From the sequence record MW825358.1: a stretch of DNA of 64,000 nt; one strand, given 5' to 3'. Position numbers and translations under genes: made by a program. Below the pieces are notes generated by a model that saw only the letters and a list, made by a program, of their open reading frames with translations, was not told the origin of the DNA and did no database searches. Positions 11,616-20,719 of the stretch are shown here, piece after piece (position 1 is the stretch's first letter; the number at the start of each line of letters is the position of its first letter).

Positions 11616-11701
11616 GCCCAAGTGGCGTAATGGCAGCCGCGGCAGACTCAAAATCTGTTGGTAGTGATACCGTGTCGGTTCGAGTCCGACCTTGGGCACC
11701 A
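11616..11701 (+). tRNA. tRNA-Leu(CAA)
   Basis: GCCCAAG/CTTGGGC acceptor, CT-CAA-AA loop, long variable arm, TTCGAGT T-loop, encoded CCA. Confidence 0.95.
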
Positions 11702-11718
11702 TTGCTTGACCGTTTCTT

Positions 11719-11894
11719 GAACGAGTGTCGTGTAGGTCTAGGCCGGACCTACGATTGATCTAACAGAGGCTCACGATAGACCTTTAGCACAGCTTGGTCA
11801 TTTATAGCACCAGATATCGAACCTCGAGTTCACTGTGTGGTCGACAATAACAGCGCCGTGAGGACAGAGAGTGAAATCCTCTCCTCGTTCACCA
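11719..11894 (+). ncRNA. tRNA-ended RNA with about 140-nt internal domain
   Basis: GAACGAG/CTCGTTC acceptor, U8, GAGAG-TGAAATC-CTCTC T-arm, A-CCA end. Confidence 0.6.
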
Positions 11895-11906
11895 TTTAGT
11901 AGCAAA

Positions 11907-11994
11907 CCGCGGGTGGTCAAATTAGGTAAAGGCAGCGGACTTAAAATCCGCCGGTGGAAACACCTTGAGGGTTCAAGTCCCTCTCCGCGGACCA
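11907..11994 (+). tRNA. tRNA-Leu(TAA)
   Basis: CCGCGGG/TCCGCGG acceptor region, CT-TAA-AA loop, variable arm, TTCAAGT T-loop, CCA. Confidence 0.95.
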
Positions 11995-12025
11995 TTCAAA
12001 ATTCCAGCCACCCGTGAGGTGTTCC

Positions 12026-12229
12026 ATGTTCGATTTCGACAGCCAAACGGATCTACCTACGCAACCGGGTTGGTATAACGTACTCATTGAAGGCGTCAGT
12101 AGTTTCATGCCGATCTATTTCCACTTTGATGGAGAGGAATGGCATCCTGATTTCTTCGAAGACGAAATTCGTGCAGGTAGAAAGTTTACGTGGTTTGAAG
12201 GAACGCGCCGTGACACACGTCCGTCCTGA
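12026..12229 (+). CDS. Small hypothetical protein within the tRNA cluster
   Basis: GAGGT RBS; 67 aa. Confidence 0.6.
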   Translation: MFDFDSQTDLPTQPGWYNVLIEGVSSFMPIYFHFDGEEWHPDFFEDEIRAGRKFTWFEGTRRDTRPS

Positions 12230-12509
12230 TTCACCACTATGTTCATCGGAGGGACTGGCGCGACAGGTCATTGAGGTCCCTGAGGACAAGTTCCTCTATA
12301 GCGACGTGATCCTTGAAAAGGTCAAGTCTTTTTTCGAAGCGCAGTCGGAAAGTAAAGCCATGGTGATTGGGGTCGACGTGTGTGGGTTTCTGTCTCGCCG
12401 CGAGGAAGGAAAATTGTTTGCCGCGTTGAGCGCGGAAGGCTTTGGTTGGACCATGGTAACATGGGATCCGAAGTCCAAGTTCACCGGGTTGTTGATTACC
12501 CGAAAGTAA
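12210..12509 (+). CDS. Hypothetical protein
   Basis: GAAGGA RBS before GTG 12210. Confidence 0.55.
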   Translation: MTHVRPDSPLCSSEGLARQVIEVPEDKFLYSDVILEKVKSFFEAQSESKAMVIGVDVCGFLSRREEGKLFAALSAEGFGWTMVTWDPKSKFTGLLITRK

Positions 12510-12550
12510 CACCTCAGTTGTGGACCGTTGCCGAAAGGCGAGAAGTTAAG

Positions 12551-12714
12551 TCAGTTTGTCGAGTGGTGGAATAGGTATACACGTGTTGGATCCCTCAGGG
12601 GTGAAGGTGCAGCCGGGAAGGGTACATCGCTCCCCGGTGCCTGACAGTGGGTGCGGCCTTAGGCCATAAGCGGGTTCGAGTCCCGCCTCAGAGTGCACTG
12701 TCCATACAAACTGA
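12551..12714 (+). ncRNA. tRNA-Leu-like RNA with expanded anticodon domain and altered acceptor
   Basis: Leu-type D-arm GTGGAATAGGTATACAC, GGCC-TTA-GGCC variable arm, GCGGG-TTCGAGT-CCCGC T-arm, outer helix TCAGTTTGT/ACAAACTGA. Confidence 0.55.
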
Positions 12715-12719
12715 TTTAA

Positions 12720-13100
12720 TGAAGTGTCCATGATCTGATGTGGTAATTCCAAGTGTAGCTGAGGGTGCAGGCTTGGATGGTCGAGACTTAAAGAACGCAG
12801 CGCCGCCAGTCTCCGACGTGATAAACCCTTGAGATCCCCCGATGACCACCGATGGTCTTGATGCCGGCTGCGGCCGGACAGAGATTAGTAGCAATCGGTG
12901 TAGGGGGTCTCTAAATTTGAATCCCTGACCAACCGTATGGCGAGGTAGGCCTCGTCACAAACCTGGGAACCTGAAGGTGGATTACCGGGCGTGCCAAACC
13001 TTTGAACTAGTGGTGTACTGTTAGCAAGACATTTGGTCGGGGCTTTGAGTGTTACCCCTACGATGGCACTGATCTTGCGATGTACTCCAAACCTTCACCC
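12720..13100 (+). ncRNA. Candidate large structured RNA
   Basis: About 380 nt with no sense ORF; several hairpins and long-range helices. Confidence 0.4.
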
Positions 13101-13123
13101 GCCGTTTTAGCTCAGTTGGCAGC
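13101..13123 (+). pseudogene. 5' fragment of an interrupted tRNA-Thr gene
   Basis: GCCGTTT-TA-GCTC-AGTTGG; acceptor strand complementary to AAACGGC at 13801-13807. Confidence 0.85.
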
Positions 13124-13144
13124 TTTTGGAATAGGATAGGTGGA

Positions 13145-13684
13145 ATGATCATTGATCTTGAAGAACCTTTCAAGTCAGTCTATTCAAAAGGCTACCTGAG
13201 AGTTGAAAGTGATGGTCGAAAATATGTGAGTCTCTACAATTGTGCAGGCGATCAAAGGTCAATCAGTTACGCGAGATATTTGTACAGCGTTCGCATGGGA
13301 TATGAGATTCCCGGTGACATTGAGATTGACCATAGAGACGGAGATAAGTCTAACGATAGTTTCGACAACCTCCGACCGATGACAATCCAAATGCATCGAG
13401 ATAAGACTTATTTCGAGCGACTGAACAAAGATTGGGTTGATCTCGTTTGTCCTTGCTGTACAGAAACTTTCCGAAGGTCTTCTCGCTATCTTAGAGATAA
13501 GAGAAGTCAGGGTCAGGTCGAGTTTTATTGTAGTCGCAGTTGCTCCACCAAAATGAACACCCCCATGAAAAAACCGCTGGAAGTGATCGAGCAGATTAGA
13601 GAACTAAAGGCTGAAGGAAAATCATCTTACTTTATTGCTAGCGCTTTAGGTGTAGCTAGAAACACGGTGATGAAGCACTGGTAA
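13145..13684 (+). CDS. HNH homing endonuclease with Zn finger and C-terminal HTH
   Basis: EIDHRDGDKSNDSFDNL HNH motif; CPCC/CSRSC; IASALGVARNTV. Confidence 0.9.
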   Translation: MIIDLEEPFKSVYSKGYLRVESDGRKYVSLYNCAGDQRSISYARYLYSVRMGYEIPGDIEIDHRDGDKSNDSFDNLRPMTIQMHRDKTYFERLNKDWVDLVCPCCTETFRRSSRYLRDKRSQGQVEFYCSRSCSTKMNTPMKKPLEVIEQIRELKAEGKSSYFIASALGVARNTVMKHW

Positions 13685-13686
13685 TT

Positions 13687-13769
13687 GCTGGGATGGCTGA
13701 GTGGCCGAAAGCACCAACCTTGTAAGTTGGTATACCACATCGTCAGTTCGAATCTGACTCCCAGCACCA
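13687..13769 (+). tRNA. tRNA-Thr(TGT) with class-II-like body
   Basis: GCTGGGA/TCCCAGC acceptor, CCAAC-CTTGTAA-GTTGG anticodon arm, TTCGAAT T-loop, A-CCA. Confidence 0.88.
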
Positions 13770-13772
13770 TCG

Positions 13773-13811
13773 ATCAGTAGGTCCTCGGTTCGATTCCGAG
13801 AAACGGCACCA
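13773..13811 (+). pseudogene. 3' fragment of an interrupted tRNA-Thr gene
   Basis: ATCAGT-AGGTC-CTCGG-TTCGATT-CCGAG-AAACGGC-A-CCA. Confidence 0.88.
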
Positions 13812-13823
13812 ATTGTTTTAAAC

Positions 13824-13943
13824 GGACCAGCAGCTCGCCCGGCGAGAGCGCAGGTACAGACGCGGAAGTAGTGTGGGTTCGATTCCCATGTCGCTTGGAC
13901 GCAATCCCCTCCCTGAGGTTAGGTTCGAATCCTATCTGGTCCA
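13824..13943 (+). ncRNA. tRNA-like RNA or pseudo-tRNA with a second T-arm nested in the anticodon position
   Basis: GGACCAG/CTGGTCC acceptor, GCTC/GAGC D-stem, terminal TAGG-TTCGAAT-CCTA and internal GTGGG-TTCGATT-CCCAT. Confidence 0.55.
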
Positions 13944-13958
13944 TCAGTGTTGTAAAAC

Positions 13959-14048
13959 GGAGAGTTGGCCGAGAGGATTAAGGCACCGGTCTTGAAAACC
14001 GACGTAGGGGAAACCCTGCCGTGAGTTCGAATCTCACACTCTCCGCCA
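13959..14048 (+). tRNA. tRNA-Ser(TGA)
   Basis: GGAGAGT/ACTCTCC acceptor, CT-TGA-AA loop, long variable arm, G-CCA. Confidence 0.95.
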
Positions 14049-19520: not shown

Positions 19521-19850
19521 GTGTTCCCCGCAAGGGGATCTGCACCGGAGTTAGTTCCTCCGAGGTCAATCGCAGGGCGAGCCCTTTTCGACTTTACACG
19601 CCACTCGTACAGTCCCAGATGGGGCGGAGTTGCGTGACTTGGTGCCTACGCATTGAGGTGTTGACTTGATCTGGCTTGGGTACCGACTAAAAGAACGCTA
19701 ACACTTCGGGCTTATTGTCCGGGTGGGAAGAGACAAGCAGGCGTGCACACCTGCCGAGGTTCTTACCTCTGATCTTCTTGGATTGGTCTCCTTAGCCTGT
19801 AGCATGCATGCGTTTCGACCAAACGCGAGCGTGCTATGGGGTAAGTGATC
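19521..19850 (+). ncRNA. Candidate structured RNA
   Basis: About 330 nt, no ORF on either strand in the track, dense hairpins including a GCAA tetraloop. Confidence 0.45.
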
Positions 19851-19853
19851 TAT

Positions 19854-19880
19854 AGGGATGTCGTCAAGTGGTCTAAGGAT
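19854..19880 (+). pseudogene. 5' fragment of an interrupted tRNA-Gln gene
   Basis: AGGGATG-TC-GTC-AAGTGGTCTAAG-GAT; acceptor strand complementary to CATCCCT at 20421-20427. Confidence 0.85.
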
Positions 19881-19885
19881 GCTAG

Positions 19886-20308
19886 ATGGGTGATATAAGT
19901 CCTCAGTTAAGCCAATACCGTCGAAGAATAGAGACTTTCAAAGAAGTCCTTGGCGGAAAGTGTTGTCGATGTGGCGGAACTGTCAATCTAGAGTTCGACC
20001 ATCGCGACCCCAATGAGAAGTATTTTACACTCACCATGGGTGTGGCCCGAAGTTATCCAGCTGAAGTACTTTTGAGTGAACTAGAAAAATGTCAGTTGCT
20101 ATGTGAGGACTGCCATCTTCAAAAAACTTTAGATGAGAGCGGCAGAGCCGAGCATGGTAGCGCTGGGATGTATCGACATCACGGTTGTCGATGTAACGTT
20201 TGTTGTGAGGCCAATAGAGAGTACTTGAGAAACTACTACGCTCAAAAAACGGCCGATAACCCAAACTACCGGCGTGAACAACGACAACGTCTGAGATTAA
20301 AACAATAG
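19886..20308 (+). CDS. HNH endonuclease
   Basis: CCRCG...LEFDHRDP...CQLLCEDCH; C-terminal HGCRCNVC. Confidence 0.9.
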   Translation: MGDISPQLSQYRRRIETFKEVLGGKCCRCGGTVNLEFDHRDPNEKYFTLTMGVARSYPAEVLLSELEKCQLLCEDCHLQKTLDESGRAEHGSAGMYRHHGCRCNVCCEANREYLRNYYAQKTADNPNYRREQRQRLRLKQ

Positions 20309-20315
20309 TTTTTAC

Positions 20316-20387
20316 AGGGGATTGGCCAAGCGGTAAGGCATCGCCCTTTGACGGCGACATGCGTTGGTTCGAATCCAACATCCCCTA
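20316..20387 (+). tRNA. tRNA-Gln(TTG), CCA not encoded
   Basis: AGGGGAT/ATCCCCT acceptor, GCC-AAGCGGTAA-GGC D-arm, TCGCC-CTTTGAC-GGCGA, GTTGG-TTCGAAT-CCAAC. Confidence 0.9.
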
Positions 20388-20394
20388 TTCCTTG

Positions 20395-20431
20395 AGGGCA
20401 TTCGCAGGTTCAAATCCTGCCATCCCTGCCA
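20395..20431 (+). pseudogene. 3' fragment of an interrupted tRNA-Gln gene
   Basis: GAGGG-CATTC-GCAGG-TTCAAAT-CCTGC-CATCCCT-G-CCA. Confidence 0.85.
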
Positions 20432-20719
20432 CTGTAATAAAAGAAGATGAGTGCACCAGTGAAGGGGTGGCACTACTAGCGAGTTGATGGCTATAAACCG
20501 TATCGCAACCTGCAACGTCCGACCAGCGTATCTTCTTTTTTTTTGTATCTCCCAGGTCTAAGACGGGAGAAGAGTGAACAAAGGAGTGTGGGAGGTAAGG
20601 CTCTGGAAGAGCCGGCGCGTGTTTGAGGTCACCGTGCCCACGGGATCTTAAGCATTGCGAAGTGTGAGCCCGGGACCAGACAATTGTGTCTGGCCCAAAC
20701 TTACGGAGTGAATTGAAGT

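Follow-up and report, generated by a model that had tools for sequence, protein, structure and literature searches.

Here we report a broken transfer RNA (tRNA) gene in the genome of the Xanthomonas jumbo phage vB_XciM_LucasX (LucasX; accession number MW825358.1; 305.6 kb), which infects X. citri, together with the nuclease-tRNA cassette that lies inside it. A putative free-standing HNH homing-endonuclease gene and a linked tRNA-Gln(UUG) gene (hereafter the cargo tRNA) have probably entered this resident gene, which is probably of the same isotype, as one block. The analysis covered a stretch of 64,000 nucleotides of the record (the window), in which positions are those of MW825358.1 minus 124000; the features of the cassettes described here lie on the plus strand. 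Five tRNA genes (two for Leu and one each for Thr, Ser and Gln) are given in the published description of the genome, which leaves split tRNA genes and associated nucleases unmentioned. In the GenBank record no gene is annotated between LUCX_154 and tRNA-Gln, and the open reading frame (ORF) and tRNA pieces of this cassette are unannotated, as are the split tRNA pieces of a second, Thr-type cassette in the same window.

Structure of the locus

The resident gene, probably a tRNA-Gln, extends from its first to its last base over positions 19854-20431, where a 5' tRNA piece is followed by an HNH ORF, a complete tRNA-Gln(UUG) and a 3' tRNA piece. The upstream piece supplies the 5' acceptor strand (7 nt) and the D arm, in which T8, G10, A14, G18G19 and A21 are present. 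In the downstream piece, a variable loop of 5 nt leads into a T arm with a perfect 5-bp stem and a canonical loop, after which come the 3' acceptor strand, G73 and an encoded CCA. All positions of the acceptor stem (7/7) are joined by Watson-Crick pairs, and the sole acceptor partner of the downstream piece within the 3 kb upstream is the D-arm-bearing piece directly before the ORF; a bare acceptor partner with at most one G-U pair would be expected 0.55 times per 3 kb by chance, a figure that counts neither the D arm nor the position. The anticodon loop and one strand of the anticodon stem are missing from both pieces, and the only Gln anticodon arm in the whole interval is that of the cargo tRNA, which is why we regard the outer gene as broken once by insertion and deprived of its anticodon segment. 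Since the pieces are too short for the Rfam tRNA model, which reported only the cargo tRNA at this locus even at E = 10, they were assessed by hand and by script.

The cargo tRNA (20316-20387) was called by ARAGORN and by Rfam (67.3 bits) and forms a complete cloverleaf with A73 and no encoded CCA. The ORF (19886-20308) is intact and encodes 140 amino acids. The motif AAGGA of the remnant D arm (19875-19879) ends 6 nt before its ATG and is likely to serve as its Shine-Dalgarno sequence; in a metagenomic locus with a similar split gene (L027; fetched loci are denoted by L numbers), AGGA of the remnant D arm likewise precedes the HNH start. An initial annotation, made from the nucleotide sequence, had proposed two halves of one tRNA gene with a perfect acceptor, a deleted and hence unreadable anticodon, a complete tRNA-Gln(UUG) between the halves and a D-arm motif placed as a Shine-Dalgarno sequence, and the analysis bears out this anatomy.

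The ORF matches the family phrog_4234 ('HNH endonuclease') with E = 9.5e-29 over residues 10-123. Its match to the Pfam HNH model is weak (E = 0.013) and misses the curated cut-off of Pfam; PF01844 is nevertheless matched by 24 of the 47 relatives in the alignment, the best of them having E = 1.5e-6. In the 47-member alignment the LucasX ORF retains 11/11 invariant and 9/9 near-invariant columns, among them the invariant residues C26, C29, D38, H39, C73 and H77 and the near-invariant C69. These columns take in two CxxC-type cysteine pairs, which would bind zinc, together with D38-H39 and H77, the predicted catalytic His/Asp and the second His of the HNH motif. A C-terminal Cys-rich motif is shared with tRNA-linked members of the family. 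Profile matches were to HNH families only, with no GIY-YIG domain found, and the ORF stands alone amid tRNA sequences outside any Rfam intron, i.e., as a free-standing gene. Neither LucasX cassette nuclease was matched in NCBIfam, and no solved structural relative was found in the PDB by sequence or profile search. A word-indexed protein search with the single LucasX ORF returned one match; the closest protein (P0001) is 50% identical and ends inside a tRNA-Val.

The insert is foreign in composition. The nuclease ORF has a G + C content of 45.4% (0.39 at third codon positions, GC3), compared with 53.7% for the window and GC3 values of 0.56-0.75 for the neighbouring ORFs. The nuclease ORF of the Thr cassette has a G + C content of 42.6%, and the values of both cassette ORFs fall under the 1st percentile of same-size windows. 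Among the LucasX tRNAs and tRNA pieces in the window, the cargo tRNA-Gln alone, one degenerate remnant excepted, is without an encoded CCA. The codon CAA makes up 37% of the Gln codons in the window ORFs. The undecayed state of the remnants, as judged from their sequences, would fit a recent event.

Isotype of the split gene

The split gene is probably a tRNA-Gln, judging by its body features and its nearest references. The two pieces were scored separately against 356 phage tRNAs from fetched loci, by a procedure that was correct in 53% of leave-one-out trials. The two best references were the tRNA-Gln(UUG) genes of phage RTH11 and of the RTH11-like contig L096, the only related phages found for LucasX. 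The split gene carries A1:U72 and G73; among 310 phage tRNAs, a weak 1:72 pair combined with G73 occurs in 11 Gln, 9 Asn, 5 Trp, 1 Ser and 0 Glu tRNAs. The variable loop is identical to that of the tRNA-Gln of phage BUCTxx99 and differs by one base from that of RTH11. BLAST with the downstream piece retrieved the 3' ends of tRNAs of many isotypes, which is not decisive, and the upstream piece had essentially no informative match. The Gln features claimed in the initial annotation are thus present, and the assignment built on them is a probable one: the modest accuracy of the classifier speaks against it, as does the D arm, which on its own ranks Glu first and Gln next, and proof is precluded by the missing anticodon.

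An imperfect hairpin, to which the 3' end of the cargo tRNA, the spacer and the first bases of the downstream piece contribute, would read UCC as an anticodon and have a pyrimidine at position 37. Its interpretation as an anticodon arm left over from the resident gene was rejected because it has a chance expectation of 2.2% and conflicts with A1:U72 and G73. It is possibly a junction microhomology.

Linkage of the nuclease family to tRNA genes

A tblastn search with the LucasX nuclease found relatives in 306 phage records, with Crossroads, Myrna, PegLeg, Alice and others matching at 35-42% identity. In Crossroads, Myrna, Marzo and BUCTxx99 the nuclease gene lies within a tRNA array and overlaps or directly precedes a tRNA. 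Among the 80 IMG/VR loci returned by an alignment-driven search, tRNAs were present within 1.2 kb of the nuclease gene at 53 loci, and at 39 a tRNA on the same strand started at most 60 nt from the nuclease stop codon. The ORF terminates inside that tRNA in 31 of the 39, with the stop codon at tRNA positions 8-10 in 11 cases and 13-15 in 6; at positions 8-10 it is usually the T8-A9-G10 triplet of the tRNA (L010-L089, L099). At several loci the nuclease start codon lies 1-4 nt past a preceding tRNA. The association was replicated in the 26 best loci from contigs of bacterial and metagenome-assembled genomes, 22 of which have tRNAs nearby and 9 an adjacent tRNA. The cassette proposed in the initial annotation therefore has the backing of its protein family.

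The isotypes of the linked tRNAs are diverse, and the nearest relative of a nuclease shares its downstream isotype in 13 of 40 cases, compared with 3.3 expected (p = 5e-5). Cluster L mycobacteriophages show filled and empty states with differing neighbouring tRNAs; in Crossroads and Zaria the nuclease lies between tRNA-Trp and the next tRNAs, and in Faith1 it is absent.

The best IMG/VR match to the LucasX nuclease (L010:1129-1560) lies directly after a tRNA-Gln(UUG); it has one in-frame stop codon and may be a decaying copy. At two further loci, the nuclease-linked tRNA is a tRNA-Lys(UUU) with a long variable region of 12-14 nt (L033:1566-1649 and L040:1549-1630). These genes and the cargo tRNA-Thr described below suggest that nuclease-linked tRNAs are often structurally atypical.

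Split tRNA genes at other sites

The second cassette of LucasX shows the same order of parts. A broken Thr-like tRNA gene (13101-13811), again with a 7/7 acceptor partner, encloses the nuclease gene LUCX_148 (13145-13684; Pfam HNH_3, phrog_14913) and a cargo tRNA-Thr(UGU) (13687-13769). The four best references for its outer pieces are all Thr. As the initial annotation had stated, the two nucleases are of different HNH subtypes, and blastp detects no similarity between them past an 8-residue motif. Of four loci examined for the HNH_3 family of the Thr cassette, three lie in tRNA clusters. LucasX has no other gene for either cargo isotype, Gln or Thr. The cargo tRNA-Thr is unusual for its isotype: it is 80-83 nt long, its variable region spans about 11-13 nt and its D arm resembles that of class II tRNAs.

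The footprint of such an event, an orphan piece with T arm and acceptor strand downstream of the nuclease and a matching piece with acceptor strand and D arm upstream, was sought at 81 loci of the phrog_4234 family. It was present at four (LucasX, L027, L073 and L076), whereas mismatched pairs of loci predicted 0.04. The interrupted region is the anticodon-arm region in every split case. At L027 the pieces classify as Gln and enclose the nuclease gene alone, without a cargo tRNA. At L073 and L076 a tRNA-Pro(UGG) sits between the upstream piece and the nuclease gene, which places the cargo ahead of the nuclease; Pro is also the class assigned to the outer pieces (C1:G72, A73). These tRNA-Pro genes (L073:1128-1198 and L076:1116-1186) scored 41.5 and 37.5 bits with Rfam and were missed by ARAGORN; their D loops are without GG and their T loops without TTC.

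On the evidence of these classifications, the combination of a split gene with a cargo of the same isotype appears to recur with a differing order of parts. The isotypes of target and cargo agree in three cases (Gln, Thr and Pro), an agreement whose joint chance, roughly estimated from the isotype frequencies of the reference set, is 2e-4. In the stretch immediately before the nuclease genes of the family, orphan D-arm-like motifs occur at 12 of the 81 loci, with about 10 expected; there is no general enrichment, and preserved remnants are therefore the exception. The initial annotation had taken the identical order of parts around unrelated nucleases as a sign of a general, repeated strategy. 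The second cassette and the recurring footprints speak for repetition, whereas the identical order does not hold at L073 and L076, and L027 has no cargo.

Flanking elements and related phages

A conserved hairpin of about 75 nt (19778-19852, plus strand) ends 1 nt before the split gene. It is 81% identical to its counterpart in RTH11 and has 20 predicted pairs, two of them with compensatory changes (counterparts L002:6001-6078, L096:11579-11655 and L100:176-250). In four Xanthomonas jumbo phages that have otherwise diverged, the hairpin stands at the head of the tRNA region; it may be a promoter or a processing element. In RTH11, L096 and L100 an ORF comes after it, and then a long array of tRNA genes, among them an intact tRNA-Gln(UUG). 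A search with a 27-nt degenerate key spanning the hairpin versions of three phages recovered only the RTH11-like phages L096 and L100 and two chance matches (L097 and L098). The flanking ORFs LUCX_152 and LUCX_158 have no homologue among 50,697 phage records, and the exact cores of the two tRNA pieces are absent from IMG/VR.

Just past the split gene, positions 20436-20548 contain an inverted repeat whose 13-nt arms are 92% complementary and lie 81 nt apart. The second arm continues into a run of T, and the repeat may be a terminator that closes the tRNA unit.

LucasX has 5 tRNA genes, two of which are the nuclease-linked cargo genes, compared with 14 in the syntenic region of RTH11 (window positions 11616-14048 compared with L002). 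A degenerate tRNA-like gene at 13824-13935 has 7/7 pairs in its acceptor stem, a D arm and, with one mismatch, a T arm; a second, orphan T arm (near 13873) is nested within it, and no nuclease gene lies nearby. This gene looks like older debris of the same type of event. A non-coding stretch at 12561-12703 (and L002:1846-1990) is conserved with RTH11, 91% identical over 68 nt, and ends in a tRNA-like T arm and an acceptor-like strand (orphan T arm near 12670). It is covered by neither an Rfam family nor an ARAGORN call and may represent an undescribed structured RNA.

Alternative explanations

The most substantial competitor of a targeted insertion is a passive one, in which the block arrived through recombination-prone tRNA arrays or short homologies, the cargo hitch-hiked without any compensating role and the match in isotype reflects similarity or chance. 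The LucasX region does contain tRNA debris without nucleases (the orphan T arms near 12670 and 13873 and the degenerate gene that holds the latter), and its array appears to be decaying, given its 5 tRNAs against the 14 of the syntenic stretch in RTH11. The nuclease of L027 lies in a split Gln-like gene without any cargo, and the hairpin at the 3' junction of the LucasX cargo could be a microhomology. However, passive transport leaves unexplained why target and cargo agree in isotype in three independent cases with two unrelated nucleases, why nuclease subclades track isotype across the family, and why each LucasX cargo is the only gene of its isotype in the phage. Moreover, crossing-over between similar tRNAs would fuse parts of the two into chimeras and would not place a complete foreign tRNA between the halves of another gene. 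We consider this explanation rather unlikely. Insertion by an integrase at an attachment site was rejected, as the neighbouring ORFs have no Pfam match (and thus no integrase domain) and no direct repeats flank the insert.

The remnants might instead act at the RNA level, pairing as a tRNA-like acceptor/T-arm helix that processing enzymes recognise, and so freeing the nuclease mRNA and the cargo as a protected unit. Both the minimum-energy and the centroid fold of the whole locus pair the acceptor strands and form the T arm, the remnants are pristine, and the pieces at L027, L073 and L076 have the same pairing potential. Yet the stability of the whole-locus fold does not differ significantly from that of shuffled sequences (z = -1.7), a recent insertion, to which the composition lends support, explains pristine remnants equally well, and remnants are preserved at only 4 of the 81 loci. 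A role of this kind appears improbable. That the gene still works, with an intron-like insert removed or its halves joined at the RNA level, as for group I introns of bacterial tRNA genes or the split tRNA genes of certain archaea, is more doubtful again. The interruption does lie in the anticodon region, where bacterial tRNA introns are found, but the Rfam search revealed no group I intron or other ribozyme family at gathering or relaxed thresholds, just a few non-coding bases separate the pieces, the ORF and the cargo, the flanks of the pieces cannot form an anticodon stem, and no Gln anticodon loop exists outside the cargo. An intron was rejected on the absence of a ribozyme family and of a possible anticodon stem, and any splicing or joining of the halves is already contradicted by the sequence. 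Equally hard to credit is a chance arrangement of pieces from different decayed tRNAs, or an assembly error. Debris of tRNA genes is common in this region, but the acceptor pairing is complete, its partner is unique and is followed by a canonical D arm, the architecture recurs at a second LucasX site and on three unrelated metagenomic contigs well beyond expectation, and the published coverage of the genome is 237x.

Several points weigh against the insertion of a nuclease gene and its cargo into a gene of the same isotype. Split footprints are confined to the four loci, and the cargo-less L027 implies that a 'rescue' is not obligatory. The A73 of the cargo, in contrast to the G73 of the resident piece, raises a question of identity; A73 is nonetheless present in 10 of 24 phage tRNA-Gln genes. 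An AlphaFold model of the nuclease built from two sequences was poor (predicted local distance difference test, pLDDT, 42.7) and did not confirm the beta-beta-alpha-metal fold expected of HNH nucleases. The phylogeny provides no tie between the nuclease and Gln, because no relative of the LucasX protein is close (50% identity at most) and the nuclease nearest to it adjoins a tRNA-Asn. Finally, searches of INPHARED, IMG/VR and the metagenome set turned up no LucasX-like genome in which the site is intact, and the case for an insertion rather than another rearrangement therefore comes from one genome.

Proposed mechanism and significance

The sequences themselves show the anatomy, the foreign composition, the linkage of the family to tRNA genes, the recurring split footprints and the agreement of isotypes. 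For the entry of the nuclease gene and its cargo as one block, we infer the cutting specificity of the nuclease, the direction, mechanism and repair route of the transfer and the activity of the cargo tRNA as follows. Nucleases of the family would cut tRNA genes of a given isotype in or near the anticodon arm, which is the isotype-specific part of a tRNA gene. The break would be repaired by copying the nuclease gene together with the neighbouring tRNA of the same isotype, which would differ in its anticodon-stem sequence and presumably escape cutting. Because its target is destroyed, the invaded genome would be immune to further cutting, and it would still possess a tRNA of the isotype, with the cargo replacing the lost gene. 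The remnant D arm would happen to provide the ribosome-binding site of the nuclease.

More tentatively, the tRNA arrays of phages may be continually rewritten by isotype-specific HNH homing endonucleases that behave as natural 'home-and-rescue' drives, each destroying a resident tRNA and installing its own uncut, linked allele in one event. The linked alleles often appear to be unusual, with long variable arms, altered D and T loops or no CCA. If this reading is true, nuclease-driven turnover would explain why phage tRNA sets are a patchwork and how variant tRNAs that could escape host defences that cut tRNAs have spread, and the two LucasX cassettes would be fresh footprints left by two unrelated nucleases. 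Since phage tRNAs counter such defences, the swapping of tRNA alleles between phages bears on phage-host arms races.

Homing endonucleases are known in phage tRNA clusters, and their reshaping of tRNA sets has mostly been inferred from adjacency. In LucasX what is left of the destroyed target can still be read on either side of the incoming block, at two sites in one genome with unrelated nucleases, and the same holds for unrelated metagenomic phages; these remnants amount to a direct sequence footprint of the en-bloc insertion of a nuclease and a tRNA into a tRNA gene. The split footprints point to the anticodon arm as the region struck and hint at a selfish strategy of breaking the gene and bringing a spare, distinct from introns and inteins. 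For the published LucasX genome, one unannotated gene and two unannotated pseudogenes are flagged.

Comparison with known systems

Several systems combine some of these properties. In the 'genes in pieces' of the ribonucleotide reductase of phage Aeh1, a free-standing nuclease gene likewise lies between two pieces of a host gene; there, both pieces encode functional subunits, whereas in LucasX the split gene no longer functions and the nuclease is accompanied by a complete second gene. Bacterial tRNA genes that harbour group I introns with homing endonucleases are also interrupted in the anticodon region, and the intron avoids the cost of gene destruction, but the LucasX insert has no ribozyme and no splicing is possible, and the cost is avoided by a spare gene. 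Islands carried into tRNA genes by integrases preserve tRNA function as well, by a duplicated 3' segment, while the LucasX insert brings a whole independent tRNA, and neither an integrase domain nor a flanking direct repeat was found at the locus. The logic of the cassette is also that of engineered 'cleave-and-rescue' and 'home-and-rescue' gene drives, in which a nuclease directed against a needed gene is linked to an uncut version of it; those drives are synthetic and eukaryotic, and the parallel is conceptual.

The Gln cassette can be compared most closely with SegB and with the HNH genes of mycobacteriophage tRNA arrays, both already known. SegB of phages T4 and T6 is a free-standing GIY-YIG homing endonuclease encoded in a tRNA gene cluster; it cuts the tRNA genes of phages that lack it and is inherited with neighbouring tRNA genes, and across phages it co-localises statistically with tRNAs and recognises a conserved T-loop motif without isotype preference (PMC2330249, PMC13096335). 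The LucasX nuclease gene likewise lies in a phage tRNA gene cluster, and SegB supplies the experimental precedent for the cutting of tRNA genes by a nuclease together with the co-transfer of tRNA genes. The two nucleases are of unrelated families, however, and SegB is indifferent to isotype while the phrog_4234 family tracks it; in addition, the phrog_4234 ORF typically ends inside the next tRNA, and SegB has not been reported from within a split tRNA gene. HNH genes have been described as the most widespread coding genes in tRNA arrays and implicated in the diversity of tRNA repertoires, in two reports (PMC5966550, PMC6409571). The HNH genes in the tRNA arrays of mycobacteriophages (clusters M, L and C) and mycobacteria belong to the same protein family as the LucasX ORF; host and phage lineage differ from those of the Xanthomonas jumbo phage, and the two reports describe adjacency only, whereas split footprints, a cargo of the same isotype and stop codons within the tRNA are features of the loci reported here.

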